This document shows positions 34,903-46,890 of a stretch of DNA of 64,000 bases, piece after piece. The stretch is taken from the sequence record ON529853.1; one strand, 5' to 3'. Numbering within the stretch: position 1 is the first letter of the stretch; the number at the start of each line of letters is the position of its first letter. Made by a program: the position numbers and the translations under genes. The notes under the pieces are model-generated. The model saw only the letters and a program-made list of their open reading frames with translations. It was not told the origin of the DNA and searched no databases.

Positions 34903-35154
34903 TCAGCCGGGTGTGGCCTCCAGACGGATCGCGCTGGCGGCCTGACAGTGGAGGAGGTTGGAGCGGAAATGCTCCACCAGGTCTCCGAGGATCGCCATGC
35001 TTTCAGGAGTGAGGTCCTCCAGGAGCATGTCGTTCATCGCGGCGGCGCCGCGAATCATGTCCATGTGTCGAGACGCGATGTCCACGCTGGGCGACTCCAC
35101 CGTCTGAACGAATGCCGCCACGGGCGGGAACGAAGGAGCGAGTGCGGCGTTCAT
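34903..35154 (-). CDS. Hypothetical protein (83 aa)
   Basis: SD GAGG before ATG; fills the gap in the operon. Confidence 0.55.
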   Translation of the reverse strand: MNAALAPSFPPVAAFVQTVESPSVDIASRHMDMIRGAAAMNDMLLEDLTPESMAILGDLVEHFRSNLLHCQAASAIRLEATPG

Positions 35155-35256
35155 CGGGGTTCCCTCAGAGGAAGTGCTTAACTGAGAGGAACCTAACCCG
35201 ACCTTAGGGGAAGGCGCAAGGACGGTCTGGGAACATTCCCCTACCGCGTGAGTGGT

Positions 35257-35697
35257 TTAGCCTGCTCCCGTAACCATGGTTACAATGGCGCCGACGACCG
35301 CCGCCAGCAGGGCCGAGCCCCCGGCGGTCAGCGGACCGATGATGATTTCCATTCGCGTCAGGCGCTTTTCCAACGCCAGCTTGTCGGCGGTGAACTCGCG
35401 CTCAAGCCGATCCAGTTCATCGGCCGCCTCTTTTTCGACGCGGGCGGTTTCCTGGGCGGCGGCCTTGAGGTCGCGTTCCAGGCTGGCGATCTTCTGCGGC
35501 TGATCCTGGGCTTCGATGCGCGTCAGGCGGTCGCGCACATCCTTCATGTCTTCCCGGAAGCCGTCGAAACGGGTGTCGACCTTGTCGACAAGCCGATCCA
35601 TCTTGTCGTTCAGCGTCGTGAAGAGACGATCAACGGCGTCGCGGAAGCGATCCTCGGGGGTCATGCCCACCGCCGGAATGGGACTGTTACCGGCCAT
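35257..35697 (-). CDS. Coiled-coil protein with a C-terminal hydrophobic helix
   Basis: Heptad-rich body; C-terminus IIIGPLTAGGSALLAAVVGAIVTMVTG. Confidence 0.7.
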   Translation of the reverse strand: MAGNSPIPAVGMTPEDRFRDAVDRLFTTLNDKMDRLVDKVDTRFDGFREDMKDVRDRLTRIEAQDQPQKIASLERDLKAAAQETARVEKEAADELDRLEREFTADKLALEKRLTRMEIIIGPLTAGGSALLAAVVGAIVTMVTGAG

Positions 35698-36187
35698 CGA
35701 CAGAGACCTCCTCGATCTGAGCGATGCCGCACACTGCGACCACGTCTCCGTTCACCATGATGGGCCACTTCCAGCCCGCGAAGCGCAGCAGGGCGCCGCT
35801 GGTCGCGTGGGGCACCACGCCGTCCACCAGGATCGTGCGGCGCTCAATGACGCACTGAAGGTCTTCATCTTCAAATTCACTGGCGTCGCCGTGGTCCCAG
35901 ATGGCGTGGTCAGGCTGCGCCAGGTAGTCGAGCGCGGTCACGCCGGTCATGGCGGTGTAGGGGCGATTGACGTGCACCATGACGAACGATCCGTCCGCTT
36001 GCAGCGCCTTGATCCAGGCCGGCAGGGGCATGTGCTCGAAGAAGCCCGTCATCAGCAGACAGGGGTCCTCCGACCGGCACTCTTCGGCGGCGTCGCGCAA
36101 AATGTTAAGCAGGGCTTCCACGTCTTGACGCGGTTTCTGCGGGATACCCGTCGGGTGGGCCGAAGGGCTGTTGTCGTTGTTCGACAC
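35687..36187 (-). CDS. Stand-alone PAS-domain protein (166 aa)
   Basis: FFEHMPLPAWIK...FVMVHVNRPYTAMTG...DHAIW...EFEDEDLQCVIE...WKWPI...VVAVCGIA follows the PAS_4 pattern. Confidence 0.75.
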   Translation of the reverse strand: MSNNDNSPSAHPTGIPQKPRQDVEALLNILRDAAEECRSEDPCLLMTGFFEHMPLPAWIKALQADGSFVMVHVNRPYTAMTGVTALDYLAQPDHAIWDHGDASEFEDEDLQCVIERRTILVDGVVPHATSGALLRFAGWKWPIMVNGDVVAVCGIAQIEEVSVDGR

Positions 36188-36228
36188 GGCCTTCGTCCCC
36201 GACGGTTAGCACGTTGATAATGACGCGG

Positions 36229-36262
36229 AGGCTACGCGGAAACCCCTTGAAAGTCAAGATTT
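36229..36262 (-). promoter_or_regulatory. Promoter AAATC-TTGACT-N17-TAGCCT upstream of the PAS gene
   Basis: Shared motif, intergenic. Confidence 0.6.
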
Positions 36263-36316
36263 TTGGCAACGATTGCCAGCCAATAAATTCCTTGACGAAG
36301 CACAGCGCCGGAATCA

Positions 36317-36411
36317 CAACACCCCGCACCGGACGGGGGCCAGTGCGGGGTGTTGCTTGACGACGGAGGACAGGGTCAGCCGGACTAGGCCCCGTGGCTG
36401 ACGACGTGCCT
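36317..36411 (-). ncRNA. Candidate ~95-nt small RNA
   Basis: TTGACA-N17-TACAGA promoter (36446-36418); GTCAGCC/GGCTGAC hairpin; 16-bp terminal hairpin 36317-36355; no ORF. Confidence 0.4.
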
Positions 36412-36463
36412 GATGCTTCTGTACGTGGAGGTGCGCCGCGTGTCAACCCTCTCGGTCAGATAA

Positions 36464-36544
36464 TGGCGGGGGCGGAGGGAATCGAACCCCCTGGTTGACG
36501 CCTTCGGAGGGCGTTGCCTACATTCCGGTCGGCACTTCGCCCCC
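36464..36544 (-). tRNA. tRNA-Arg(CCG)
   Basis: GGGGGCG/CGCCCCC-G-CCA; anticodon loop CTCCGAA; enlarged D-loop. Confidence 0.85.
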
Positions 36545-36582
36545 GAGGCGGTGGGCCGGGCGGACCCGGCGTTAAGTAAGAG

Positions 36583-36664
36583 TGGCGCCCAAGGCAGGAT
36601 TTGAACCTGCGTTTGCAACTCCGCTACGGATAAGGCCTTCGTAGGACCCCTCGGTTACTTGGGC
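36583..36664 (-). tRNA. Atypical tRNA-Arg(ACG): D-arm absent, long variable region
   Basis: GCCCAAG/CTTGGGC-G-CCA; only 8 nt between acceptor and anticodon stem; loop CTACGAA; T-arm GCAGG-TTCAAAT-CCTGC. Confidence 0.65.
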
Positions 36665-36667
36665 ATT

Positions 36668-36751
36668 TGGCTCCTATGAGAGGACTCGAACCTCTAAGTC
36701 TTGCGACGGTCGATTAACAGTCGACTGCGTTTACCATTCCGCCACATAGGA
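36668..36751 (-). tRNA. tRNA-Asn(GTT) with long variable arm
   Basis: TCCTATG/CATAGGA-G-CCA; loop CTGTTAA. Confidence 0.9.
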
Positions 36752-36776
36752 ACAAACTGAATACTGATGTTTTACC

Positions 36777-36850
36777 TGGTTCTGGCTCTAGGAATCGAAC
36801 CTAAATCTCGGAGACCAAAACTCCGCGTGATACCGTTACACTAAGCCAGA
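36777..36850 (-). tRNA. tRNA-Gln(TTG)
   Basis: TCTGGCT/AGCCAGA-A-CCA; loop TTTTGGT. Confidence 0.9.
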
Positions 36851-36861
36851 TCAGGAAAACT

Positions 36862-36939
36862 TGGTAGGAGGTACTGGATTCGAACCAGTGAAATGTCGGT
36901 ATGTAACACCGATGCCTTGGGCCGCTTGGCGAACCTCCC
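36862..36939 (-). tRNA. tRNA-Val(TAC)
   Basis: GGGAGGT/ACCTCCT-A-CCA; loop GTTACAT. Confidence 0.85.
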
Positions 36940-36984
36940 ATGAAAGAGTAGCGTATCTCCACTACTCAGTGACAAAAGTAAAGT

Positions 36985-37061
36985 TGGTCCTAGCACCAGG
37001 ATTTGAACCTGGGACCGAGCGGTTATCGACCGCGCGCTCTACCAAACTGAGCTATGCTAGG
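36985..37061 (-). tRNA. tRNA-Ile(GAT)
   Basis: CCTAGCA/TGCTAGG-A-CCA; loop TCGATAA (C33). Confidence 0.85.
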
Positions 37062-37065
37062 GCTG

Positions 37066-37140
37066 TGGTAGCGGATACAGGAATCGCACCTGTGCTTGTC
37101 GGCGTGTCATACCGATGCCTTTCTACTTGGCTAATCCGCC
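37066..37140 (-). tRNA. tRNA-Val(GAC)
   Basis: GGCGGAT/ATCCGCT-A-CCA; loop ATGACAC; T-loop TGCGATT. Confidence 0.85.
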
Positions 37141-37153
37141 ACACAGGAAAAGG

Positions 37154-37228
37154 TGGCCCACCCAGGAGCGCTCGCATCTCCGTCTCGGGGATTTCACTCC
37201 CGTGCTAATCTGTCTCAGCTATGAGTGG
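37154..37228 (-). tRNA. Atypical tRNA-Phe(GAA)
   Basis: CCACTCA/TGGGTGG-G-CCA; loop GTGAAAT; aberrant T-arm. Confidence 0.65.
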
Positions 37229-37229
37229 A

Positions 37230-37313
37230 TGGTGGGAAGGGAGAGAATTCGCACTCTCACAGCTTGCGCGGGGGATTTACAGTCCCTTGGGCTCACTCGT
37301 GCCCAGCCTGCCC
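37230..37313 (-). tRNA. tRNA-Tyr(GTA)
   Basis: GGGCAGG/CCTTCCC-A-CCA; loop CTGTAAA; long variable arm. Confidence 0.85.
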
Positions 37314-37379
37314 AAAATGTTACGGCTCAGTCGCCGCCGGTCATGGTGATCTCCTGGATCAGATGAAGGTGTTGAAACG

Positions 37380-37414
37380 GAAAAGGCCCGCCTGGTGGAA
37401 ACCAGGCGGGCCTT
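37380..37414 (-). terminator. Intrinsic terminator (attenuator A) ahead of the 9-tRNA operon
   Basis: GGCCCGCCTGGT-TTCC-ACCAGGCGGGCC followed by TTTTCCGTTT. Confidence 0.85.
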
Positions 37415-37445
37415 CGAAACTTGGGTGTTCTAAGTGGGTATCAGA

Positions 37446-37541
37446 TTAAATCTGCGTCCCACCATCGCCCATGCACGAATGGCCCGCCCGGTTAAACCGG
37501 ACGACCTGAATCTGCTGCACGTTGTTGCGATAGGTGAACAT
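37446..37541 (-). CDS. Leader peptide A (31 aa, leaderless): MFTYRNNVQQIQVVRFNRAGHSCMGDGGTQI
   Basis: ATG lies 7 nt after the -10 box; 16 of codons 2-18 are read by the nine downstream tRNAs. Confidence 0.8.
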   Translation of the reverse strand: MFTYRNNVQQIQVVRFNRAGHSCMGDGGTQI

Positions 37542-37548
37542 GAGGAGA

Positions 37549-37577
37549 CATTTACTACAGGTGGCGGGCAGTGTCAA
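37549..37577 (-). promoter_or_regulatory. Promoter A: TTGACA-N17-TAAATG
   Basis: Perfect -35 and 17-nt spacer; predicted start falls at the leader ATG. Confidence 0.7.
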
Positions 37578-37788
37578 CATTATTGTCGACGATGGACCCA
37601 AGTTTTTTCGATCTCGCGATCCCAGACGCCCCAATTGCCGTCCGTCGGATAGTCGCGGTAGCGCCAGCCGCCGCAGTAACGGCACATGGCTTCGGTCTGG
37701 TCAGCCTCAGCGGGATGCGGCTCGCAGTCCCCCGAGACGTCGCACAAAGGCCACCCGTCCGGCCCCAGGGTGGGGTCGTCCGGGTCCG

Positions 37789-38085
37789 TCACAGCGTGTA
37801 GTCGACAGCGGGGTCGGGAAGCCAGACCTCTTCCAGCAGACGTTCCTGCCACTGGGCCTCGTGGTCCCAGGACAGGATCACGCCGGACCGCGTTTCGCTG
37901 CCGTCGGTCAGCGTCGCGCAGCCGTAGACGTCAAAGGGAGGCGCGCCATCATAGGAATGATGGCGCAAGGTATAGTGATGGGGACCGTTGCCGCCGCACC
38001 AGCGCACCAGAACTTTCGCTCCGTCGGGGAGAGCGCGGATTTCGGCCGGGGTCAGCCTGGGGGTATCGGGGACGGCGTGGGTCAT
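37789..38085 (-). CDS. Hypothetical protein (98 aa)
   Basis: TGATG overlap with the upstream gene. Confidence 0.7.
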   Translation of the reverse strand: MTHAVPDTPRLTPAEIRALPDGAKVLVRWCGGNGPHHYTLRHHSYDGAPPFDVYGCATLTDGSETRSGVILSWDHEAQWQERLLEEVWLPDPAVDYTL

Positions 38086-38348
38086 CAGGCGGGGTTCGGC
38101 GGCGTATACGGCATGGGGCGCAGACGGGGCTCGGTGCGCGGATGACTGATTCCGGTCGGCATGATGTTCAGTTGCAACCCGGCGCCCCGGCGCAGCAGCA
38201 TCATGAAGTCATGGGCACGCACAGCCTCGGCCGGCGAGGCGAATGCCAGTTCGATCAGCACGCGATTGCTGTCGGTGCTGCACGCGGTCGCGATCTCGTC
38301 AGGCTCCAGGTCCAGAGCCTGCGTGGGACTGATGTTGAGCCGGCTCAT
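38085..38348 (-). CDS. Hypothetical protein (87 aa)
   Basis: MSRLNISPTQ; ATG overlaps the def stop (ATGA). Confidence 0.65.
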   Translation of the reverse strand: MSRLNISPTQALDLEPDEIATACSTDSNRVLIELAFASPAEAVRAHDFMMLLRRGAGLQLNIMPTGISHPRTEPRLRPMPYTPPNPA

Positions 38349-38887
38349 GCGCGTTTCATCCGACGCACGTTGTCCTGGTGCTTCTTCAGCAGCATCGCCC
38401 GCTTCAGCGGCGAGACCCGGTCGATGTTGCGCACCCCGTCCAGGTGGTCCATCTCGTGCTGAAGGCAAATGGCCTTGTAGCCCTTGCCGGAGAGGCTCTG
38501 CATACGGCCGTGAATGTCCTGGTATTCGACCGTCACTTCCCGATGCCGTCGCACGGGGAAAAAGACGCCCGGCATGGACAGGCATCCCTCCGGCATCTCG
38601 ATCATGTCCTCGGACTTGTCGACGAACGTCGGGTTGATCAGGATCAGTTTGGGACGATCGACCATGGCGTCCTGCACCGGCAGGCCAACATCCGGCAGGT
38701 CGATCATGGTGAAGATGCGCAAGGGCACGCCGACCTGAACGGCGGCGAGCCCCGCGCCTTCCGCCAGCAACATGGTGTCGACCATGTCGAAGCAGAGCGC
38801 CCGCACCTCGTCGGTGATCTCGAAGACCGTATCAGAGGGCTTCGTCATCCGGGCGTCGGTGCAGGGGATGATCTGGCGCAGCGCCAT
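38345..38887 (-). CDS. def: Peptide deformylase
   Basis: GAGLAAVQVG, EGCLS and HEMDHLDG motifs. Confidence 0.97.
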   Translation of the reverse strand: MALRQIIPCTDARMTKPSDTVFEITDEVRALCFDMVDTMLLAEGAGLAAVQVGVPLRIFTMIDLPDVGLPVQDAMVDRPKLILINPTFVDKSEDMIEMPEGCLSMPGVFFPVRRHREVTVEYQDIHGRMQSLSGKGYKAICLQHEMDHLDGVRNIDRVSPLKRAMLLKKHQDNVRRMKRA

Positions 38888-39114
38888 TAGGGCAGGCTCC
38901 CCAGGCCGCCGGCGGCGGAAGCCCGCCCATCACGCCAGCGGCCGACGGCGCTGACCATCCGATCGGCCTGGCCCTCGACGACTTCCAAGACGTCGATCGC
39001 CTGCATCAGCGCCATGCGCGCGTCTTCCAGGTCAAGGTCCTGGAGTTTGACAATGCGGCCCCGCACCACGACCTGATAGTCGTGGTACGGCGCCCGTTCG
39101 GCCACTTCGGACAT
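38887..39114 (-). CDS. Hypothetical protein (75 aa)
   Basis: Coupled to def (TAATG). Confidence 0.65.
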   Translation of the reverse strand: MSEVAERAPYHDYQVVVRGRIVKLQDLDLEDARMALMQAIDVLEVVEGQADRMVSAVGRWRDGRASAAGGLGSLP

Positions 39115-39117
39115 GGC

Positions 39118-39411
39118 TCAGATTTCGCCGAGCGCGCTCAGGTACAGGTCCAGGATGGCGTCTTCTTCCTGGCGCTTGGCCTTGTCCTGCTTGCGCAGGC
39201 GCAGCACCTTGCGCAGAATCTTCACGTCGTATCCCTCGCCCTTGGCTTCGGCGAAGACTTCCTTCATGTCGACCATGACGGCCTGCTTGTCCTCTTCGAG
39301 GCGCTCCAGCCGCTCGATGATCGAGCGCAGGCGGCCCTGGGCGGAGGCGGTCAGGGCGTCGTCGGCCGACATGGCGTTGGCGGGCTCGACGCCGGTGGTG
39401 GTCTCGGTCAT
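39118..39411 (-). CDS. gapR: GapR/DUF2312 nucleoid-associated protein homologue
   Basis: LRSIIERLERLEEDKQAVMVDMKEVFAEAKGEGYDVKILRKVLRLRKQD...EEDAILDLYLSALG. Confidence 0.9.
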   Translation of the reverse strand: MTETTTGVEPANAMSADDALTASAQGRLRSIIERLERLEEDKQAVMVDMKEVFAEAKGEGYDVKILRKVLRLRKQDKAKRQEEDAILDLYLSALGEI

Positions 39412-39435
39412 AGGTCTCTCGGGGTTGGTCGCCGG

Positions 39436-39681
39436 TTATCCGGTGATGAGGAAACGGAGGACGGCGAGAAGTTCGCGGTCCGCATCAGGCTGTAGGGCCT
39501 TCTGGTCGATGAGGCGCAGGGCGGCGTTCTTGCGCGCCTGCTTCTTGGCGGCGTGGACGCCGAGAGTTTGCGCCAAGGCGCGCATCTCGGTCTCGTCCAC
39601 ATAGGCGCCGAGCGCATCCCCATACCGCCGGTTGGCGGGATAGGTGGCGTAGTCGGGGGCGAGCGGCGGTAGGCCGTCCAT
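39436..39681 (-). CDS. Hypothetical protein (81 aa)
   Basis: MDGLPPLAPDY; SD GGAG. Confidence 0.6.
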   Translation of the reverse strand: MDGLPPLAPDYATYPANRRYGDALGAYVDETEMRALAQTLGVHAAKKQARKNAALRLIDQKALQPDADRELLAVLRFLITG

Positions 39682-39857
39682 CACATGTCTCCACAAGGAT
39701 CGTGCAGGGTGTCGCCCTGGTCGAGGTCCTCGACGAAACGGCCGTCCCGGAAACGACCGGTGGTGGTCTGGCCGTTGAGCCGGCGCACGACCCGCAACTG
39801 ATGGTCCAGCCAGTAGTAGGGCACGCCCCACGCCTCGCGGTAGACCGGCTCGGTCAC
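39681..39857 (-). CDS. Hypothetical protein (58 aa)
   Basis: GTG start overlaps the DUF4170 stop. Confidence 0.55.
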   Translation of the reverse strand: MTEPVYREAWGVPYYWLDHQLRVVRRLNGQTTTGRFRDGRFVEDLDQGDTLHDPCGDM

Positions 39858-40114
39858 GAGTAGGTCGCGCCTGAAGCGCGAACCACCAGATCGGCGACAG
39901 GTTTGCCGTGGGCGACGATCATCTCGTCGTAGGTGTTGATGTGGAAACGCATCAGGGCGTTGTCGACCGTCTGCCAGGCGTAGGCCTTCCACGCGTCGCG
40001 GGCGTCTTCGCGGCGCGTGAAAGACCCCACGAAGATGATCTTGCGCGGATCGCGGAAGGCTTCGTCGCGGGGATGGGGGTGCTCGCCCCCATAGACGTAA
40101 TAGGTGTCAGGCAT
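39854..40114 (-). CDS. DUF4170 family protein
   Basis: YVYGGE...F.D...IFVGSF...EDARDAWKAYAWQTVDNALMRF pattern. Confidence 0.75.
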   Translation of the reverse strand: MPDTYYVYGGEHPHPRDEAFRDPRKIIFVGSFTRREDARDAWKAYAWQTVDNALMRFHINTYDEMIVAHGKPVADLVVRASGATYS

Positions 40115-40116
40115 GC

Positions 40117-41004
40117 TTACAAAGTCACGATCAATCGGGGATTGAAGTTCGGGTTCAGTTCATGCCCGACATAGCCGCGCGGATTGCAGATCACGCGGGT
40201 CTCGCCGATCTGGTAGTCGCTGCTGTCATGCATATGACCATGGACCCACAGGGCGGGCTCCCATTCCAGCATCAGCGGCTCCAGCCGCGAGGCGTAGGCC
40301 GGGTTCAGCGGCGATCCCCGATAGCGATGGTGGCTCGACTGCTCCGACGGCGCATGGTGAGTAATCACCACGGTCGGGCCGTCATGCGGAACCCGTAGCG
40401 TTTCGGCCAGGAAGAACCGGCTCTCCAGGTGAAGGCGCCGCGTGTCTTCCGCCGTCAGGCGCTGCTGCTGCTTCAGTTCGATCTGCTGATAGTCGTTCAT
40501 ATCGGACTGGGCGTGCCGGATCGACAAGGGCCAGGTCCCGTAGAGATCGAAGTCGGTCCACAGGGTGGCGCCGAGGAACCGGACGTCGCCCATATGGACC
40601 TGCTCGTTATCCATGACGAAGACGCGGGCGGGCGCCAGTTCGTCCGCCTTGGCCTTCATCTTCTCGATGTGGCGGTGGTAGCGCCGCTTGCCGTAGAACT
40701 CGTGGTTGCCCGGCACATAGAGGCAAGGGACGTCAGGGAAATGACGCGCCAGCCAGATCACGCCGACGACGCCCGTCGCCAGGTCGCCGGCGGCGATGAC
40801 CAAATCGATCTCGTCCGCCGTCGGCGCCGTCCAGGTGCGCCGGTCCATGCCGCCGAACTCCAGATGGAGGTCCGACAGGATCAGGGCGCGCAAGGGCCGT
40901 CGTCCGGACCGGCGCTGCGCCAGGCCGGCTTCGATGTCGGCCTGCATGTCGGCCGCAGCCGCCACGGTGAACTCCATCTCAGCCTTGCTCCACTCGGTCT
41001 CCAT
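40117..41004 (-). CDS. Calcineurin-like metallophosphoesterase
   Basis: LSDLHLE, AAGDL, VPGNHEFY, VITHHAP, WVHGHMH motifs. Confidence 0.93.
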   Translation of the reverse strand: METEWSKAEMEFTVAAAADMQADIEAGLAQRRSGRRPLRALILSDLHLEFGGMDRRTWTAPTADEIDLVIAAGDLATGVVGVIWLARHFPDVPCLYVPGNHEFYGKRRYHRHIEKMKAKADELAPARVFVMDNEQVHMGDVRFLGATLWTDFDLYGTWPLSIRHAQSDMNDYQQIELKQQQRLTAEDTRRLHLESRFFLAETLRVPHDGPTVVITHHAPSEQSSHHRYRGSPLNPAYASRLEPLMLEWEPALWVHGHMHDSSDYQIGETRVICNPRGYVGHELNPNFNPRLIVTL

Positions 41005-41024
41005 CGTGGAGCATCCTTGAAATC

Positions 41025-41143
41025 TGGAGCGGGTGGACAGACTCGAACTGCCGCCTCCGGGTTAGCCACCCGGCGCTCCTGGGTCCACGCGAACCCCCGA
41101 CGATGATTCGCGTGATCATCGTCGGCCCTAGAGCCTCACCCGC
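41025..41143 (-). ncRNA. 119-nt tRNA-like RNA: Gly-type acceptor, GCT anticodon, two-hairpin D-loop insertion
   Basis: GCGGGTG/CACCCGC-T-CCA; D-stem GCTC/GAGC around 52 nt; CCGGG-TGGCTAA-CCCGG; GGCAG-TTCGAGT-CTGTC. Confidence 0.7.
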
Positions 41144-41255
41144 ATAAGTTGGCAGGAGTTTTCAGATATGGCGAGCCATACCCAGGGCGACCCTCCTGCC
41201 AGGAACCCCCGTCTCGGTTTCTTTCACCGGCCCCGACACGAGCACCTGTCAAAGC

Positions 41256-41336
41256 CTATTTAGCCGTCAGGCTTGTGAGAACAAGAGAGGCGATTAGGCG
41301 CCTCTCGATGAACCACGTTGCGGACGGACGTAACAT
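41256..41336 (-). CDS. Possible leader peptide MLRPSATWFIERRLIASLVLTSLTAK
   Basis: Lies after TTGACA (41378-41373) and before a structured stretch and the tRNA-like RNA. Confidence 0.35.
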   Translation of the reverse strand: MLRPSATWFIERRLIASLVLTSLTAK

Positions 41337-41383
41337 CGGCTTGCCGTGATTACTGGCAGACGGCGCCGTAGCTGTCAACAATG

Positions 41384-41414
41384 AAAAACGCCCCGACCTT
41401 TCGATCGGGGCGTT
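41384..41414 (-). terminator. Intrinsic terminator closing tRNA operon B
   Basis: AACGCCCCGA-N8-TCGGGGCGTT followed by TTT. Confidence 0.8.
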
Positions 41415-41416
41415 CT

Positions 41417-41728
41417 TCAGAGATTCGCCATCCACTGCTTGCGGCAGCGGGTGTGGTCCTTCCAGGACTTGCCGCCGGGACGCGACGCCATGAGGTCGTC
41501 GTAGGACGACGGCAGGACCATCCGGCGGCCACGGGCGCGGTAGAGGCGGTCGTGGGCTTCGCCGGTGTTGCGACGCCGCTCCTGCATGGTGCGGGGGCAG
41601 CGATGCATGTAGCGCCAGCGATGGCGGAAACGCCGGCAGCGGTAGGGCTCGCCGGGCTCCAGGTAGAGGACGCGCCAGCCCACGAAGTAGAAGCCGGTGT
41701 GGGTGACGCGTTCAAATTGGGGCTTCAT
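41417..41728 (-). CDS. Basic hypothetical protein (103 aa)
   Basis: SD AGGAGG; followed by the terminator. Confidence 0.75.
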   Translation of the reverse strand: MKPQFERVTHTGFYFVGWRVLYLEPGEPYRCRRFRHRWRYMHRCPRTMQERRRNTGEAHDRLYRARGRRMVLPSSYDDLMASRPGGKSWKDHTRCRKQWMANL

Positions 41729-41828
41729 GACAGCCTCCTGCTAGGTTGAGTACCTAGCGGGTGCTGTATTCCAGGTAGAATTTGATCATGGCCGCATCCT
41801 ATCTCAAGCGGGGCGGTTCGTCGAGGAA

Positions 41829-41917
41829 TGGCGGATGGGGCAGGGATCGAACCCGCGTAACCCTCTCGGGTGTCGACCGCTTAGCAAGCGGCTGCCTTAC
41901 CTCTCGGCCACCCATCC
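41829..41917 (-). tRNA. tRNA-Ser(GCT)
   Basis: GGATGGG/CCCATCC-G-CCA; loop TTGCTAA; long variable arm. Confidence 0.95.
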
Positions 41918-41924
41918 GGGGTGA

Positions 41925-42009
41925 TGGCGGTGCGCCAGGGAATCGAACCCTCAACCTTGCGGTCGGCGACGGTTTTCAAGGCCGCTTGTCCCCATGGACG
42001 CTGCACACC
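41925..42009 (-). tRNA. tRNA-Ser(TGA) with a compact 4-bp/4-nt D-arm
   Basis: GGTGTGC/GCGCACC-G-CCA; D-arm GTCC-ATGG-GGAC; loop CTTGAAA. Confidence 0.8.
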
Positions 42010-42014
42010 AAAGA

Positions 42015-42105
42015 TGGCGGACGGCACGCGATTCGAACGCGTGGGACCCAGGGGGTCCGCCTGCTTTCCAAGCAGGTGCCTTAAGCCGGGCTCAGCCAGC
42101 CGTCC
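42015..42105 (-). tRNA. tRNA-Ser(GGA)
   Basis: GGACGGC/GCCGTCC-G-CCA; loop TTGGAAA. Confidence 0.95.
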
Positions 42106-42110
42106 GGTCT

Positions 42111-42328
42111 TGGTGGAGGCGAGGGGATTCGAACCCCCGTAGACGCCGAACCCCCGCATTACCGAGGGCCGATCTCAGGTTTAGAACGCGTGTGCCGTCC
42201 TGACCATCTTCCGCAGGCCAGGAGGTCTATCGTAACGACCCCGTCGATCGGTTGCCTCTGCGTCCCGGATTTACCCGGACCGTTGTTCTGTTCCACGGTG
42301 CTCATGCCGAAACCCGAGCGACGCCCCC
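42111..42328 (-). ncRNA. ssrA: One-piece compact tmRNA (218 nt)
   Basis: 5' GGGGGCG...GGTTTCGGC; 3' GGGGG-TTCGAAT-CCCCT-CGCCTCC-A-CCA; G3:U70 and A73 Ala identity; no anticodon arm. Confidence 0.8.
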
Positions 42329-42338
42329 GTGAAGGAAA

Positions 42339-42426
42339 TGGAGGATGGTGTGGGATTCGAACCCACGGAACCTTGCGGTCCTCCGGCTTTCGAAACCGGC
42401 GCGATCGGCCACTCCGCCAACCATCC
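42339..42426 (-). tRNA. tRNA-Ser(CGA)
   Basis: GGATGGT/ACCATCC-T-CCA; loop TTCGAAA. Confidence 0.92.
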
Positions 42427-42433
42427 AGAACAG

Positions 42434-42622
42434 TCAGGCCGAGGCCGGACTGTAGTTGTCGATGTCGTCGACCCGGATCGCCGTGCCCGCCGCAATCTGG
42501 CGGTCGGCGCTCAACAGGTCGGCGACCAGGTCGTCGGCCGAGACGGCGGTGCCGAGGGTGGCGAACTTCACGTTCACCAGGCGGCCGTCCGCAAACATCT
42601 CGTCGATCGCGGCGCGATCCAT
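42434..42622 (-). CDS. Hypothetical protein (62 aa) inside the tRNA operon
   Basis: MDRAAIDEMFADGRLVNVKF; SD-like AAAGG. Confidence 0.65.
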   Translation of the reverse strand: MDRAAIDEMFADGRLVNVKFATLGTAVSADDLVADLLSADRQIAAGTAIRVDDIDNYSPASA

Positions 42623-42655
42623 GATAGACCTTTCTGCCGGACGCGCCGGCGGTGA

Positions 42656-42726
42656 TGGTGGAGACAGTGGGGCTCGAACCCACCAAGGCGTCCTTGCAAA
42701 GGATGCCTGCGCCCTGCGCTGTCCCC
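42656..42726 (-). tRNA. Compact tRNA-Ala(TGC)
   Basis: GGGGACA/TGTCTCC-A-CCA (G3:U70); loop TTTGCAA; tiny D-arm. Confidence 0.8.
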
Positions 42727-42763
42727 GTAGGGGTTGATCGTCAGCCATGCTGACAACCATTGT

Positions 42764-42839
42764 TGGTCCTGGCACTCAGATTCGAACTGAGCCATCGTGC
42801 TCCACAAACACGCGCCTCCACCGCAGAGGCTTTACCAGG
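42764..42839 (-). tRNA. tRNA-His(GTG), no G-1, A73
   Basis: CCTGGTA/TGCCAGG-A-CCA; loop TTGTGGA. Confidence 0.88.
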
Positions 42840-42841
42840 GT

Positions 42842-42929
42842 TGGTCGCGACGACAGGGATCGAACCTGCCCGGCCTCTCGGCCACTACCACCTCAAGGTA
42901 GCGCGTCTACCAGACTCCGCCACGTCGCG
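42842..42929 (-). tRNA. tRNA-Leu(GAG)
   Basis: CGCGACG/CGTCGCG-A-CCA; loop TTGAGGT. Confidence 0.95.
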
Positions 42930-42938
42930 ATCGAATGT

Positions 42939-43024
42939 TGGTGCCCGACCCCGGACTCGAACCGGGACGCCACGAGGGCCACGCCTTTTGAGGGCGCTGT
43001 GTCTACCGTTCCAGCCAGACGGGC
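42939..43024 (-). tRNA. tRNA-Leu(CAA)
   Basis: Loop CTCAAAA; long variable arm; CCA end. Confidence 0.92.
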
Positions 43025-43033
43025 AGTGAAAGA

Positions 43034-43120
43034 TGGTGCGGGTGAGAGGATTCGAACCTCCCCGGCACAAAGGCCACGAGTACCTGAGACTCGCGCGGCT
43101 ACCAACTTCGCCACACCCGC
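43034..43120 (-). tRNA. tRNA-Leu(CAG)
   Basis: GCGGGTG/CACCCGC-A-CCA; loop CTCAGGT. Confidence 0.95.
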
Positions 43121-43125
43121 ATTTT

Positions 43126-43207
43126 TGGAGAACCCTGGTGGAGTCGAACCACTTGCGCCTGGATTAAAAGCCCAATCCCGGCCACCCGGATTTAACGCTC
43201 AAGGTCC
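43126..43207 (-). tRNA. Atypical tRNA-Lys(TTT)
   Basis: Loop CTTTTAA; ~10-nt linker before the D hairpin; U73. Confidence 0.65.
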
Positions 43208-43220
43208 CCTAAAATGATGT

Positions 43221-43311
43221 TGGTGAACGTGGTCGGACTCGCACCGACGATGAAGGTTGTAACCTAACGGGATTAAGAGCCCCGGCCTCTCGCTACTGAG
43301 GTGACACGTCC
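43221..43311 (-). tRNA. tRNA-Lys(CTT) with long variable arm
   Basis: GGACGTG/CACGTTC-A-CCA; loop CTCTTAA; T-loop TGCGAGT. Confidence 0.8.
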
Positions 43312-43349
43312 AAAACTGTTGTTCTTCTCCTGAAGACTTGATATGTGCA

Positions 43350-43420
43350 TGGAGCCGGCGGACGGTGTCGAACCGTCCCATGTCCACTACGAAAGGTCAG
43401 CCCTGCCACCAGGCGCCGGC
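43350..43420 (-). tRNA. Compact, degenerate tRNA-Thr(CGT)
   Basis: GCCGGCG/CGCCGGC-T-CCA; loop TTCGTAG; weak anticodon stem. Confidence 0.6.
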
Positions 43421-43428
43421 GTTGTTGT

Positions 43429-43499
43429 TGGTGCCAAGGGAGGGAGTCAAACCCTCGCTGAACCCATACCAAGGGCTCGACCGATCACCCGGCCTTGGC
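43429..43499 (-). tRNA. Compact tRNA-Thr(GGT)
   Basis: GCCAAGG/CCTTGGC-A-CCA; loop TTGGTAT. Confidence 0.75.
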
Positions 43500-43507
43500 G
43501 TTGAAGA

Positions 43508-43582
43508 TGGTCGGAACACCGGGATTCGAACCTGGGACCCCTAGCTTCCCGAGCCAGTGCGCTACCGCTGCGCTACATTCCG
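43508..43582 (-). tRNA. tRNA-Pro(GGG)
   Basis: CGGAATG/TGTTCCG-A-CCA; loop TCGGGAA (C33, A37). Confidence 0.85.
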
Positions 43583-43591
43583 ATTTGAAGA

Positions 43592-43668
43592 TGGTCGGCG
43601 AGGGAGGATTCGAACCTCCGATCCCTCCGACCCGAACGGAGTGACTTACCAGACTTGCCCACACGCCG
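43592..43668 (-). tRNA. tRNA-Pro(CGG)
   Basis: CGGCG.../...CGCCG-A-CCA; loop TTCGGGT. Confidence 0.92.
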
Positions 43669-43677
43669 ATGGAAACG

Positions 43678-43711
43678 AAAAAAGGCCCCGGAGGCTATGC
43701 GCCTGGGGCCT
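43678..43711 (-). terminator. Intrinsic terminator (attenuator B) just before the 15-tRNA + tmRNA operon
   Basis: GGCCCC-AGGC-GCATA-GCCT-CC-GGGGCC followed by TTTTTT. Confidence 0.8.
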
Positions 43712-43782
43712 GAAACAACTGCTGTTTTGGGATTCAGCAGGTGATCGGCCCCTTAAGGGCGCCTCACCTGCGAGGACTGGAC

Positions 43783-43917
43783 TTAGGGCCAGCCTTCCAA
43801 GGAGACGCCACCGGTGGTGGGGGACTTCGGCGACAGTTTCGTCGGCGCATGCGCGAGCGTCGACAGCGCCGTGGCGGCGGTCGAAAGATGGCTCAGCTTG
43901 TGCGACAAGGTAGTCAC
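43783..43917 (-). CDS. Leader peptide B (44 aa): MTTLSHKLSHLSTAATALSTLAHAPTKLSPKSPTTGGVSLEGWP
   Basis: GTG start downstream of promoter B; codons 2-35 encode only T, L, S, H, K, A, P, the amino acids of the downstream tRNAs. Confidence 0.8.
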   Translation of the reverse strand: MTTLSHKLSHLSTAATALSTLAHAPTKLSPKSPTTGGVSLEGWP

Positions 43918-43969
43918 GATGAAGGTCCAGTCCGAAGAAGGAGCGCGAATGCGCTGTGATGAAGTCTGA

Positions 43970-43998
43970 TCTCTACAGGAAGCTTGAGCGTATGTCAA
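43970..43998 (-). promoter_or_regulatory. Promoter B: TTGACA-N17-TAGAGA
   Basis: Perfect -35 and 17-nt spacer. Confidence 0.7.
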
Positions 43999-44195
43999 GA
44001 ACTTCAGCAGAAAAAGTTGGTAGAGGGGCTGATCGCGCTTGTCGAGCGACCCTCTCGAAACGCCTTGTGCCAGGATCGGCGGCGATCGTCAACAGGGAAA
44101 ATGCACGCGCGCGGCCGAGGGGGAGCGGAAGACCGCGCGCGTGCCCGGCAGACCGTCGGGGGACGGGGCCTGGGTCGTCGGGGGACGGGGAGGGG

Positions 44196-44432
44196 TCAGC
44201 CGGCGCGGCGCTTGAGCGTCTCGTGCAGCGGCGGATAGGGGACCGGGCCGTAGATCACCTCGACGAGGCGAGGGCGGCGGCCGGTGCGGATTTTGGAAGG
44301 CAGGGGCACGTTGCGGCGCCGCAGTTCGGCGGCGGCGGCGGCGCTCGCCAGGGAGCCTGACAGGTAGACGCCGATCAGTTCGGCGACCGTCAGGGTCATC
44401 ATGCGCTGGGCGCGGGTGGTGTTGTGAGCCAC
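44196..44432 (-). CDS. Hypothetical protein (78 aa)
   Basis: GTG start with SD GGAGA. Confidence 0.6.
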   Translation of the reverse strand: MAHNTTRAQRMMTLTVAELIGVYLSGSLASAAAAAELRRRNVPLPSKIRTGRRPRLVEVIYGPVPYPPLHETLKRRAG

Positions 44433-44530
44433 GAGGGTCTCTCCATCTGGATGTGATCCAGGCGGGAGACGCGGTTTCGCGCTGGGTGACCGGTGTGGTC
44501 CCCGTCCTGGAAATTACCAGATGCGAGAGT

Positions 44531-44722
44531 TTAGTCGGAGGGCTTGGCCCCGAAGACCGAGGCGATCGCCGTCAAAGCCTTCTTGACCCGGTTGGGTCGC
44601 TGGGTCAGCGCCGAGGCGCAGACCTTCTTGATTTCGTCGAGGGTGAGCGAGGCCGGGTCACGCAGGCCGCGCGCGGCGATCGAGCCGACGCTGGCGGAGG
44701 TGACTTCGGGGGTGGTGCTCAT
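44531..44722 (-). CDS. Hypothetical protein (63 aa)
   Basis: MSTTPEVTSASVGSIAARGL; SD GAGG; directly after tRNA-Asp. Confidence 0.65.
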   Translation of the reverse strand: MSTTPEVTSASVGSIAARGLRDPASLTLDEIKKVCASALTQRPNRVKKALTAIASVFGAKPSD

Positions 44723-44733
44723 GGAAAAACCTC

Positions 44734-44808
44734 TGGCGAGTCCAAGGGGAGTTGAACCCCTCTCTCCACCGTGACAGGGTGGTGTCCTAACCGATAGACG
44801 ATGGACCC
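44734..44808 (-). tRNA. tRNA-Asp(GTC)
   Basis: GGGTCCA/TGGACTC-G-CCA; loop CTGTCAC. Confidence 0.95.
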
Positions 44809-44839
44809 GTATCAGAGGGTCGATCCGCAGGAAGATGCT

Positions 44840-44917
44840 TGGAAGGGCGCCGGAGACTCGAACTCCGCTCACTTGGTTGAAAGCCAAGTATCCTGCAAAC
44901 CGCTAGACGAGCGCCCC
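44840..44917 (-). tRNA. tRNA-Glu(TTC)
   Basis: GGGGCGC/GCGCCCT-T-CCA; loop CTTTCAA. Confidence 0.93.
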
Positions 44918-44951
44918 ATAAAGCACAGGGCGTCGAACACGAGAGCCGCGA

Positions 44952-45017
44952 TTAGGCGGCGGTCGTATCTCGGCCCTGGAAGGCCTCTCGTTCGTAGCTG
45001 GTCAGACGGTAGGTCAT
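44952..45017 (-). CDS. Leaderless short ORF MTYRLTSYEREAFQGRDTTAA
   Basis: ATG lies 6 nt after the -10 of TTGACA-N17-TACAAG (45052-45024). Confidence 0.5.
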   Translation of the reverse strand: MTYRLTSYEREAFQGRDTTAA

Positions 45018-45229
45018 TTGGTGCTTGTAACAGAACTGTCGGTGGGTGTCAAGAAGGACGGCGAATCTTTTTTGGCCTTTCGGGCGGGACGATCTTCCTC
45101 GCCCTCAGGCTCGGCCGCGTCCCAGCCCATCCACAGGGCCGCGAGAAAGGCAGGCGGACCCATCAGGGCTTCCAACCGCTTCAAGGCCCGGTCGTTGGCC
45201 GCCAGGAAGGCGTCGCCGTATTCAAGCAT
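45014..45229 (-). CDS. Possible hypothetical protein (71 aa)
   Basis: SD GAGG before ATG 45229; overlaps a promoter. Confidence 0.4.
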   Translation of the reverse strand: MLEYGDAFLAANDRALKRLEALMGPPAFLAALWMGWDAAEPEGEEDRPARKAKKDSPSFLTPTDSSVTSTK

Positions 45230-45247
45230 GGAACCTCGGAGGATACA

Positions 45248-45669
45248 GGGACAGGCTTCAATGGGCGGCGTTTGACCGCGCCCATCTCGGCGGTAGCAGC
45301 GCACCAGCCCTGCTCGGCTGGCCCCGCCCCTCGTTCCGGCATGTGCCAGGATCGACGGCAAAGGTCAAGGGGGGAATTGCGGTGGGTACAGCTTCAACCG
45401 GCCTTGCGGCCTGCGGGTCTTTCGGGCGTCCTGCCCACCGCGCCTACTACGACGCCTTTTTCGGCCCCGGCGCGCCGGAGAAGAAAAATCGACGGGTGAC
45501 CGCTACCGGCCTCGCCTGCTGGCCCGTCCCAGCGCCTGACCTTCTCGACGCGACGCCCTTGTGGGCGTTATGGCCTTCCCGTCCGAAGACAGACGCCGCG
45601 AAGGGTCAGCGGGACCGCATGATCGTCAGCCGCACGGCCAGCGCAGCGAGAGGTTCAGAGGCCTGTCCC
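45248..45669 (-). ncRNA. Candidate ~420-nt multi-domain structured RNA
   Basis: Terminal 9-bp helix GGGACAGGC/GCCTGTCCC; several nested helices; UUCG and GCAA tetraloops; starts 8 nt after the tRNA-Gly CCA. Confidence 0.6.
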
Positions 45670-45677
45670 GGAAAGAG

Positions 45678-45752
45678 TGGAGCGACTGGTCGGAATCGAA
45701 CCGACGTCCCCAGGTTGGAAGCCTGGTGCTAAGGCCCCTCAGCTACAGTCGC
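45678..45752 (-). tRNA. tRNA-Gly(TCC)
   Basis: GCGACTG/CAGTCGC-T-CCA; loop CTTCCAA. Confidence 0.95.
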
Positions 45753-45766
45753 AGTATAAAACAAGG

Positions 45767-45842
45767 TGGAGCGACTCTCGGGACTCGAACCCGACCCTGC
45801 GCGTTGGCAACGCGTTGTACCCACCCATAATACGTGAGTCGC
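45767..45842 (-). tRNA. tRNA-Gly(GCC)
   Basis: GCGACTC/GAGTCGC-T-CCA; loop TTGCCAA. Confidence 0.92.
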
Positions 45843-45854
45843 ATGGTTAATAAA

Positions 45855-45936
45855 TGGCACGGGTGGAGGGATTCGAACCCCCGACATATGCTGGTTTTGG
45901 AGACCAGTGCCTTGAGCCAGACTTGGCGACACCCGT
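45855..45936 (-). tRNA. tRNA-Trp(CCA)
   Basis: ACGGGTG/CACCCGT-G-CCA; loop CTCCAAA. Confidence 0.92.
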
Positions 45937-45949
45937 GTAAACTTGAAGG

Positions 45950-46474: not shown

Positions 46475-46545
46475 TCAGCAAACGGACTTTCAACCGGCTG
46501 GCAGGATTCAGGTTTTGCGGGGGTGGCGCAGTGCGCCGGCAGGTC

Positions 46546-46845: not shown

Positions 46846-46890
46846 AGTGAGGGACCTTATACGAACTGCACGCGATTGTCAATTATTACG

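Follow-up and report, generated by a model that had tools for sequence, protein, structure and literature searches.

A putative leader-peptide attenuator ahead of a tRNA operon in Brevundimonas phage vB_BpoS-Bambus

The control of a phage tRNA operon was studied in a stretch of 64,000 nucleotides (nt) from sequence record ON529853.1 (termed here the window), which belongs to the Brevundimonas jumbo phage vB_BpoS-Bambus (348 kb, Dolichocephalovirinae); coordinates in the record are obtained by adding 248,000 to the window position. On the minus strand, at 37577-37381, a module termed leader A is followed by an array of nine tRNA genes, and leader A is probably a ribosome-mediated (leader-peptide) transcription attenuator that controls this tRNA operon. 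Several hallmarks of an attenuator are present, namely a short open reading frame (ORF) on the same strand, enrichment of cognate codons within it, an intrinsic terminator, an antiterminator that excludes the terminator, and a protector helix with its 5′ strand in the sensor codons. Fifteen phages of the phiCbK group share the module, and a match between leader codons and tRNA genes was also found for other leaders and other arrays.

Codon content of the leaders and identity of their tRNAs

Codons 2-18 of leader A specify F T Y R N N V Q Q I Q V V R F N R, and 16 of the 17 belong to the set {F,Y,R,N,V,Q,I}. A first-pass annotation of this DNA had proposed that 16 of codons 2-18 match the downstream tRNAs, and the proposal withstood statistical analysis. 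Taking the background frequency of the seven amino acids from the long ORFs of the window (0.30), the binomial probability of such a match is 5e-8, and of the 93,516 stop-free 17-codon windows in the six frames of the 64 kb, none but leader A reaches 16 in-set codons. The match is restricted to one part of the ORF. All 15 codons of the sensor tract (codons 4-18) are in the set, compared with only 2 of the 13 in the remainder of the ORF, a value close to background (Fisher p = 3.6e-6).

The same division was seen in all ten distinct lineages, in which 14-15 of the 14-15 codons of the sensor tract are in the set. The substitutions within the tract (N/Q, N/F, Q/R, Q/N, V/R, V/F, R/Q, F/N/V, and N/Y/I/F) all exchange one member of the set for another, and the sole exits, in Colossus and CcrPW, are to Leu or Trp in the final codon of the tract, where the pairing of segment 2 described below constrains the codon. 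Some of the codons used in the tract are minor ones, namely TAT (32% of Tyr codons in the phage ORFs), ATT (12%), and TTT (8%), and the ATT codon is invariant across the 14-phage alignment. In lineages where an Ile(AAT)-like gene occupies the Asn slot of the array, the leader has one Asn codon rather than two or three, and leaders of the phiCbK type have an extra Ile codon besides. From this small sample it is suggested that the leader codons track the change of the Asn/Ile slot.

The tRNA genes themselves were identified with ARAGORN and Rfam (Table 1). Default ARAGORN and the GenBank record list only five of the nine (Val-GAC, Ile, Val-TAC, Gln, and Asn), and the two Arg genes were picked up by Rfam, slightly over the gathering score. 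When the ARAGORN threshold was lowered to 90%, exactly nine genes were called, all on the correct strand. The nine tRNAs of the first-pass annotation were therefore all recovered, seven by default ARAGORN or Rfam and those for Tyr and Phe only at the 90% threshold. The eighth gene is an Arg tRNA with an ambiguous anticodon register, however, and the anticodon ACG given earlier competes with CCT in the ARAGORN fold. The Tyr-like and Phe-like genes have 7-base-pair (bp) acceptor stems, an encoded CCA, and TGCGA-type T loops, lack a typical D loop, and were undetected by the Rfam tRNA model even at E values up to 10. A canonical tRNA-Tyr is present in the same slot in Kikimora, Gurke, and Bajun, and the acceptor stem of the Phe-like gene shows compensatory changes between Bambus and Kikimora. 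The order of the array is conserved as (Tyr) Phe Val Ile (Ile) Val Gln (Gln) Asn-or-Ile(AAT) Arg Arg (Arg).

Several further observations concern the array. The second Val tRNA (36939-36862) has the anticodon TAC in Bambus and CAC in 12 of 12 relatives scanned (Domovoi, Kabachok, Kikimora, Gurke, phiCbK, and others), and the GTG codon of the leader is readable by either anticodon. The phiCbK genome paper states that no phage of the group has a tRNA-Tyr (PMC3556154). Contrary to that statement, a Tyr(GTA)-like gene follows the leader in phiCbK too (~1781-1865 in sequence L007). Between the leader A terminator and tRNA-Tyr, at 37344-37327 on the minus strand, lies a mini-ORF with a strong Shine-Dalgarno sequence (aggagatcaccATGACCGGCGGCGACTGA; MTGGD*). 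Most relatives keep this mini-ORF in the form MTGGD, MNNGG, or MTGN, and phiCbK and Bajun lack it; its role might be to load ribosomes onto transcripts that have passed the terminator.

The start of leader A has a fixed geometry. The sequence reads TTGACA, a 17-nt spacer, TAAATG, 7 nt, and then the ATG at 37541-37539, exactly where the first-pass annotation had placed a promoter and a start codon. The distance from the first T of the -35 box to the ATG is 36 nt in all 15 phages. At the -10 position the relatives have TAAAAG, TAGACA, TATAAG, TAGGGT, or TAGCTT, and Colossus and CcrPW have GACACA, in which the initial T-A of the hexamer is absent. The motif TTGAC-N18-TA occurs ten times in the window, mostly on the transcribed strand, compared with 1.4 expected (a seven-fold enrichment). 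No Shine-Dalgarno sequence was seen 5′ of the leader A ATG in any of the 15 phages, and the A of the ATG is the predicted transcription start, which would give a leaderless mRNA. In Caulobacter crescentus, 375 leaderless mRNAs (9.6% of coding sequences) are translated about as efficiently as leadered ones (PMC4117421). Frame 0 of the leader is open for 31-32 codons in all 15 phages, with the ATG and the stop codon kept and with indels only in multiples of three; in most cases the other frames are broken. A scan of the window with consensus promoter and terminator models listed neither the promoter nor the terminator of leader A. Between the terminator and the first tRNA gene (37380-37314), neither the TTGAC-N18-TA motif nor a sigma-70-like site was found; the lack of such a motif is, however, no proof that a promoter is absent.

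The relationship between leaders and arrays was further studied at other loci, and for these the claim is one of matching composition. Leader B (Table 1) has a 5′ untranslated region of ~50 nt, and its codons 2-35 fall in the set {T,L,S,H,K,A,P} in 34 of 34 cases (P = 7e-13, unique among 71,984 windows). The tRNA genes behind it are Pro, Pro, Thr, Thr, Lys, Lys, Leu (three), His, Ala, and Ser, with the Thr and Lys assignments read by hand from the anticodon loops. The preference is reciprocal, as leader A contains 18 codons of set A and 5 of set B, and leader B contains 1 and 37, respectively (Fisher p = 4e-10). Conservation of leader B extends to Domovoi, Kikimora, Bajun, and phiCbK (CbK_gp083 in the phiCbK annotation), and its stop codon, like that of leader A, lies in a hairpin loop. 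Leader C (45052-44920, minus strand) has the geometry TTGACA-N17-TACAAG-N6-ATG and a predicted leaderless ORF (MTYRLTSYEREAFQGRDTTAA), and directly precedes tRNA-Glu and tRNA-Asp. Its pattern E-x-E...D is kept in phiCbK and Bajun (L019 1045-1175; L017 948-1085). In this case the 3′ end of the ORF and its stop codon are inside a long hairpin that is followed by a U-rich run, and from this the architecture of leader C may differ from that of leader A.

A distant phage provides a separate comparison. The record of Erythrobacter phage vB_EliS-L02 (OL955261) has no tRNA annotation; ARAGORN found 32 tRNA genes, in three arrays that are grouped unlike those of Bambus and each have a promoter and a leader of their own (Table 1). 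Leader 3 of this phage shows the leaderless geometry TTGACA-N17-TATACT-N7-ATG. When in-set codons were counted for each leader against each array, the diagonal of the 3 x 3 comparison gave 17/27, 15/19, and 22/26, and the off-diagonal values were at most 7/27; even the rare Cys and Trp are matched within leader/array pairs. As the tRNAs are grouped differently in different phage lineages and the leaders change accordingly, the match cannot be put down to descent from one ancestral peptide.

The distribution of leader A was explored with a distant-mode search, which found the leader in 45 phage records. Among these are seven Brevundimonas jumbo phages, Bajun, and the Caulobacter phages phiCbK, Karma, Magneto, Swift, Rogue, CcrBL10, Colossus, CcrPW, and RB23, and a metagenomic contig (L047) contributed the fifteenth leader A sequence. 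This contig was the one true homologue among 30 matches of a metagenome pattern scan for segments 2, 3, and 4 in order. The other 29 have no promoter/ATG geometry, and 28 of them have no tRNA called downstream, the remaining one having a single Gly tRNA. A GC-rich terminator with an upstream half-copy of itself thus arises by chance and is not diagnostic without the ORF and the tRNAs. Pattern scans of viral contigs gave no match with a first pattern and only three known phages (CcrBL10, Rogue, and Karma) with a second.

Mutually exclusive helices in the leader RNA

The RNA of leader A can adopt the trp-like 1:2, 2:3, and 3:4 structures that had been proposed for it at first pass, and all three show compensatory changes in the 14-15 related phages. 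The terminator, GGCCCGCCTGGT-ttcc-ACCAGGCGGGCC-TTTT at 37412-37381, comprises a 12-bp G+C-rich stem and a 4-nt loop (-29.2 kcal/mol), and its homologues carry a rho-independent terminator annotation in the records of phiCbK and Colossus. Its 5′ arm, segment 3, can pair instead with segment 2 (AACCGGGCGGGCC with GGCCCGCCTGGTT) over 13 bp with one G-U, as first claimed. The proposed protector, in which segment 2 sits in the local hairpin GTCCGGT-TTA-ACCGGGC, was likewise found and has a folding energy of -13.5 kcal/mol.

Pairing was scored on the 14-phage alignment against slid controls; the lineages that are independent are few, so that shuffle-based covariation statistics overstate independence. 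The protector 1:2 was paired in 93.9% of cells (best slid control 52%), with three pairs changed on both sides. For the antiterminator 2:3 the corresponding value was 98.1% (best slid control 55%) and for the terminator 3:4 it was 99.4% (best slid control 64%), with two pairs changed on both sides in each case. In Bajun, a G to A change in segment 2 is accompanied by C to T in segment 3, by which 2:3 gains an A-U pair and 3:4 is left with a G-U, and this change is therefore specific to the antiterminator. In Colossus, one column changes jointly in segments 2, 3, and 4 and the G-U of 2:3 becomes U-A.

The antiterminator is much longer than the 13 bp originally described. It forms an extended hairpin of ~94 nt (nt 49-142 counted from the AUG; -53.6 kcal/mol in Bambus) that is present in every lineage. 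Beyond the 11-13 bp of 2:3 there is a UUCG/CGAA extension, which covaries as UCGCG/CGCGA, UUCGC/GCGAA, and CUCG/CGAG, and then inner pairs. At the top, the leader stop codon lies in or overlaps the loop of a local hairpin of 4-7 bp (mostly 5-7 bp) in all 15 phages, and the apical stems differ by lineage (CAGAU/AUCUG, GGGAC/GUCCC, GAGGGU/GCCCUC, GGACCC/GGGUCC, and others). RNAalifold on MAFFT alignments recovered only the 2:3 stem, as the interior is too divergent, and the inner and apical helices were assessed per sequence.

The protector extends beyond its core as well. In the single-sequence minimum free energy (MFE) structures of the lineages shown and in the Bambus centroid, nt 10-46, which correspond to codons 4-16, pair with nt 50-79. 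The outer helices of this extension (helix 0; UAUCGC/GCGAUG and CGUGCA/UGCAUG) are 92.3% paired in the alignment with modest covariation, which is weaker support than for the core 1:2. Because the 5′ strand of the extended protector covers codons 4-16, the whole of the codon 4-18 tract is cognate and not just the codons near segment 1. The helix 0 pairing also explains in part the conservation of Y-R and x-D in the peptide. The leader RNA as a whole is strongly folded compared with dinucleotide shuffles (z = -6.06), and MFE folding of a growing transcript keeps segment 2 with segment 1 until segment 3 emerges, after which the antiterminator is formed.

Table 1. Positions of leader A, its tRNA array, and the other leaders. 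Positions refer to the window unless another sequence is named; helices and segments are numbered as in the text.
Feature	Position	Strand	Remarks
-35 box TTGACA	37577-37572	(-)	TTGAC invariant in 15/15 phages; 17-nt spacer varies freely
-10-like hexamer TAAATG	37554-37549	(-)	T and A at positions 1-2 best conserved
Leader A ORF, 31 codons + TAA (MFTYRNNVQQIQVVRFNRAGHSCMGDGGTQI)	37541-37446	(-)	TAA at 37448-37446
Sensor tract, codons 4-18 (Y R N N V Q Q I Q V V R F N R)	37532-37488	(-)	all in-set
Segment 1, GTCCGGT	37502-37496	(-)	5′ strand of core protector; 1:2 helix
Segment 2, AACCGGGCGGGCC	37493-37481	(-)	pairs with segment 1 or terminator 5′ arm
Inner antiterminator 5′ strand, A-UUCG-UGCAUGGGCGAUG	37480-37463	(-)	in naked RNA pairs with codons 4-11 instead (helix 0)
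Apical antiterminator hairpin	37462-37434	(-)	leader TAA (37448-37446) in loop
CGAA + segment 3 (GGCCCGCCTGGTT, 37412-37400)	37416-37400	(-)	antiterminator 3′ strand + terminator 5′ arm
Segment 4 (ACCAGGCGGGCC) + TTTT	37396-37381	(-)	terminator 3′ arm; 3:4 helix
Nine-tRNA array, putatively regulated genes	37313-36468	(-)	ARAGORN, Rfam
Tyr(GTA)	37313-37230	(-)	ARAGORN at 90% threshold only
Phe(GAA)	37228-37154	(-)	ARAGORN at 90% threshold only
Val(GAC)	37140-37066	(-)	default ARAGORN, GenBank
Ile(GAT)	37061-36985	(-)	default ARAGORN, GenBank
Val(TAC)	36939-36862	(-)	default ARAGORN, GenBank
Gln(TTG)	36850-36777	(-)	default ARAGORN, GenBank
Asn(GTT)	36751-36668	(-)	default ARAGORN, GenBank
Arg, eighth gene	36664-36583	(-)	Rfam
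Arg(CCG)	36542-36468	(-)	Rfam
Leader B promoter TTGACA-N17-TAGAGA	TTGACA 43998-43993	(-)	5′ untranslated region ~50 nt
Leader B ORF	GTG 43917 to stop 43785-43783	(-)	reads TTLSHKLSHLSTAATALSTLAHAPTKLSPKSPTT after start codon
Leader B terminator	43710-43678	(-)	
Erythrobacter phage leaders	L054 20829-21060, 22418-22600, 23995-24147		
Erythrobacter leader 1, MFNVIAMNNPAPAIMVPVAMACVEGTRD			then Pro, Pro, Val, Ile, Ala, Asn tRNAs
Erythrobacter leader 2, MTFGRTKRDRREGDERGFTS			then Lys, Lys, Gly, Gly, Asp, Ile, Glu, Glu, Arg, Arg, Phe, Arg tRNAs
Erythrobacter leader 3, MFTQTALHLLTQTTLCWQCQYSSLSPF			then Ser, Tyr, Leu, Leu, Thr, His, Gln, Gln, Ser, Cys, Trp, Thr tRNAs

The proposed switch and competing explanations

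In the mechanism proposed for leader A, host RNA polymerase would initiate at the A of the ATG and a 70S ribosome would translate the leaderless 31-codon ORF behind the moving polymerase. Three mutually exclusive helices would then compete: the protector (P, nt 10-46 with 50-79), the antiterminator (AT, nt 49-79 with 110-142), and the terminator (T, nt 130-141 with 146-157). P, with the sensor codons as its 5′ strand, would sequester nt 49-79, which are the 5′ strand of AT. With cognate aminoacyl-tRNAs plentiful, the ribosome would run through and either cover the 5′ strand of AT or let P re-form behind it, T (37412-37385) would form, and transcription would stop at ~nt 160. Should any cognate tRNA be scarce, the ribosome would be slowed in codons 4-16, on the 5′ strand of P, and nt 49-79 would be freed to pair with nt 110-142. 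The 5′ arm of the terminator would thereby be captured and the polymerase would enter the nine tRNA genes. That stalling leads to read-through is expected by analogy with the trp model. As the operon products would relieve the stall, they would therefore exert negative feedback on their own synthesis.

Some of the data weigh against this mechanism. The T tract of the terminator consists of four U only. At equilibrium, the full-length RNA prefers the terminator in most constrained folds, even with a ribosome footprint imposed (Bambus), and it follows that the switch must be kinetic and is not to be judged thermodynamically. Equilibrium folding with imposed footprints gave terminator and antiterminator calls that were inconsistent between phages. 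In findpath estimates, which are indicative only, naked RNA had to cross a high barrier of ~18 kcal/mol to leave the full protector for the antiterminator, and one of ~10 kcal/mol to pass from the antiterminator to the terminator. Two of the nine tRNAs (Tyr-like and Phe-like) are non-canonical, with a putative function, and leaders of the phiCbK type retain one Asn codon though the Asn slot is taken by an Ile(AAT)-like gene. Finally, the residues in the C-terminal half of the peptide (R-S-x-[MV]-x-D-G) are maintained through synonymous codon changes; RNA pairing explains part of this conservation, and the peptide itself could also have a role.

The main uncertainty is the behaviour of the leader without translation, which could be either trp-like termination or read-through by default. 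In the second case the antiterminator would win when no ribosome is present, the 1:2 hairpin would serve in polymerase pausing or synchronisation, and termination would occur only if a ribosome kept pace on nt 49-96. A delay in codons 2-16 would then give read-through, and there would be no super-attenuation. Consistent with such a scheme, the antiterminator (-53.6 kcal/mol) greatly exceeds the core 1:2 hairpin (-13.5 kcal/mol) in stability, a transcript ending at segment 3 has the antiterminator as its MFE structure in all lineages, and the last 15 codons of the ORF lie on the antiterminator 5′ strand, with their end in the apical loop. However, the protector covers all of nt 50-79 in the MFE folds, leaving no obvious toehold, and its pairs covary as those of a true anti-antiterminator would. 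This arrangement is considered possible but unlikely, and trp-like termination is preferred.

Two further explanations, both improbable and to a similar degree, dispense with one part of the attenuator each. In the first, the ribosome still senses the leader, and the output is Rho access, RNase cleavage, or pre-tRNA processing and not hairpin switching. Leaders B and C and those of the Erythrobacter phage match their arrays, yet not all of them have an obvious 1:2/2:3/3:4 arrangement, and the conserved mini-ORF with its Shine-Dalgarno sequence follows the leader A terminator, as such a mechanism might lead one to expect. For leader A, however, three exclusive and covarying helices together with a canonical intrinsic terminator make up the simplest sufficient mechanism.

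In the second, it is translation that is dispensable, and leader A would act as an RNA alone, either by binding tRNAs directly with codon-like triplets in the manner of a riboswitch or T-box, or in trans as a small RNA of ~160 nt that is set free by termination. The strong folding of the leader (z = -6.06) would fit with this, as would the ability of alphaproteobacterial attenuator RNAs to act in trans, for example rnTrpL of Sinorhizobium meliloti (PMC6614838). Searches of 35000-47500 and 36440-37340 with Rfam, including the T-box model RF00230, gave no hit for a T-box, and the leader returned only sub-threshold chance matches to CyaR and Hrs10. Moreover, the cognate triplets lie in a single frame with a conserved ATG and stop codon, indels that are multiples of three, and a constant ORF length, and fifteen consecutive specifiers for seven tRNAs would be without precedent. 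A role in trans of the terminated RNA would come on top of attenuation and not in its place.

The annotation of the locus suggests yet another explanation. Leader A closes a run of small co-directional genes, including one for peptide deformylase, and its ORF is annotated in GenBank as part of BAMBUS_04500, a 44-amino-acid hypothetical protein (window 37580-37446, minus strand) with an ATG that overlaps the stop codon of the upstream gene (TAATG) in Bambus. The first 13 codons of BAMBUS_04500 coincide with the leader A promoter. This extension shows mostly non-synonymous changes between Bambus and Domovoi/Kabachok and has no counterpart, the start being absent, in Kikimora, Gurke, phiCbK, and others. 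In the relatives, the whole BAMBUS_04500 frame did not show conservation under purifying selection. In Kikimora and Gurke the upstream gene ends immediately 5′ of TTGACA, and in phiCbK the module is preceded by a tRNA-Ser and ~350 nt of noncoding DNA, with no protein gene ahead of it. The promoter, ORF, terminator, and same tRNA array are kept together whatever adjoins them upstream. Because the extension is not conserved and the upstream context varies, the conserved unit is this module and not the tail of a protein operon, and the annotated start of BAMBUS_04500 and of its counterparts in Domovoi, Kabachok, and Papperlapapp is probably wrong. It was also considered whether the 44-residue protein is a zinc ribbon (CxxC...HxC), and this was rejected, as Domovoi and Kabachok have Arg in place of the second Cys and other relatives lack the N-terminal extension.

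The least credible explanation, namely that the ORF encodes a functional small protein, that the hairpin terminates the upstream protein operon, and that the likeness between codons and tRNAs is incidental, can draw on the coding annotation, the TAATG overlap, and the conserved R-S-x-[MV]-x-D-G with its synonymous changes, but it is contradicted by the unconserved extension, the phiCbK context, and the lack of any Pfam or PHROG match for the leader peptides, and it leaves unexplained five independent leader/array matches, the restriction of the match to the protector strand, and three covarying alternative helices.

Neighbouring elements, related systems, and significance

Three other elements of the window were recorded. 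Right after the last Arg tRNA, at 36446-36320 on the minus strand, a TTGACA-N17-TACAGA promoter is followed by ~100 nt and a terminator-like hairpin (CACCCCGCAC...GTGCGGGGTG-TTGTGATT); with no obvious ORF, this could be a small RNA. Between Ser tRNAs, at 42111-42242 (extending to ~42330) on the minus strand, there is a long tRNA-like gene with a canonical T arm, an acceptor stem, and a CCA end. It was not called by ARAGORN and scored 31.9 bits (E = 8.5e-10) against the Rfam model for transfer-messenger RNA (tmRNA), which is below the gathering score of 47; either a phage tmRNA in reduced form or a tRNA carrying a large insertion could account for it. Finally, the 13-nt motif CGATCCTGGCACA occurs in two copies (45354-45342 and 44078-44066, minus strand), each 11-12 nt 3′ of a TTGAC box and 5′ of small genes, and may represent a second type of promoter or operator.

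Leader-peptide attenuation is the textbook mode of control of amino-acid biosynthesis operons. As in E. coli trpL, a short leader ORF with regulatory codons is combined in leader A with exclusive 1:2, 2:3, and 3:4 helices, such that the position of the ribosome would decide on termination. Unlike trpL, the phage leader lies before tRNA genes, has codons for seven amino acids and not one, and is predicted to be part of a leaderless mRNA. The trpL stop codon lies between segments 1 and 2, whereas the phage ORF follows the 5′ strand of the antiterminator and stops in the apical loop; the protector and antiterminator of the phage are also much longer, and the signal is probably tRNA abundance itself. 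The ilvL (ilvGMEDA) and thrL leaders of enterobacteria similarly mix codons for several amino acids tied to the products of the operon (Ile/Val/Leu and Thr/Ile). Those leaders deal with two or three amino acids and biosynthetic enzymes, whereas the phage leader has seven classes, includes codon types for both Val and both Arg isoacceptors, and is linked to decoding tRNAs. T-box riboswitches serve the same purpose, linking the state of a tRNA to the expression of genes with translation-related functions by means of a terminator/antiterminator switch. There, the specifier codon and the T-box sequence bind a single uncharged tRNA directly and no translation is involved, whereas the phage element is an ORF.

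Closer to the phage hosts, the trpL leader of S. meliloti (rnTrpL/peTrpL) is a ribosome-dependent alphaproteobacterial attenuator from which a short terminated RNA is released. It controls trpE(G), and its RNA and peptide act in trans (PMC6614838, PMC7968998). The leaderless mRNAs of C. crescentus, a member of the same host family (Caulobacteraceae), start at the A of the ATG, have no Shine-Dalgarno sequence, and are initiated by 70S ribosomes, as predicted for leader A. They are ordinary protein-coding mRNAs, however, and no leaderless regulatory leader before tRNA genes is described among them (PMC4117421).

A full-text literature search, which did not cover all subscription journals, found no description of a leader peptide or attenuator ahead of tRNA genes. 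The phiCbK genome paper contains neither 'leader' nor 'attenuat' and reports that Rfam found no RNA elements besides tRNAs (PMC3556154). Term look-ups showed nothing relevant in the phiCbK XRE/RNA-seq paper (PMC10688885) and the Erythrobacter phage paper (PMC9127768). Although the type of mechanism is classical, its new aspects would be the tRNA-array target, a sensor of 5-8 amino acids, the predicted leaderless start, and the placement of the stop codon in the apical loop.

Taken beyond leader A, the evidence tips moderately towards a general scheme in which the phiCbK group and its distant relatives run a modular, demand-sensing control of tRNA supply, where each array has a promoter and a matching leader and charged tRNAs set their own transcription. 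If the proposed attenuation is correct, these would be the first tRNA genes under leader-peptide control, with a direct loop in which tRNAs regulate their own transcription through the ribosome. The grouping of phage tRNA genes into particular arrays would be explained, and the annotation would need correction, as the leaders are unannotated or listed as hypothetical proteins and the records lack several non-canonical tRNAs. The 5- to 8-amino-acid leaders would also be natural multi-input codon sensors that are usable in synthetic biology. For the phages themselves, such control would be a plausible answer to depletion or cleavage of host tRNAs during infection, and a regulated rather than constitutive tRNA supply would join the debate on why phages carry tRNAs, alongside codon usage, host shut-off, and tRNA-targeting defences.

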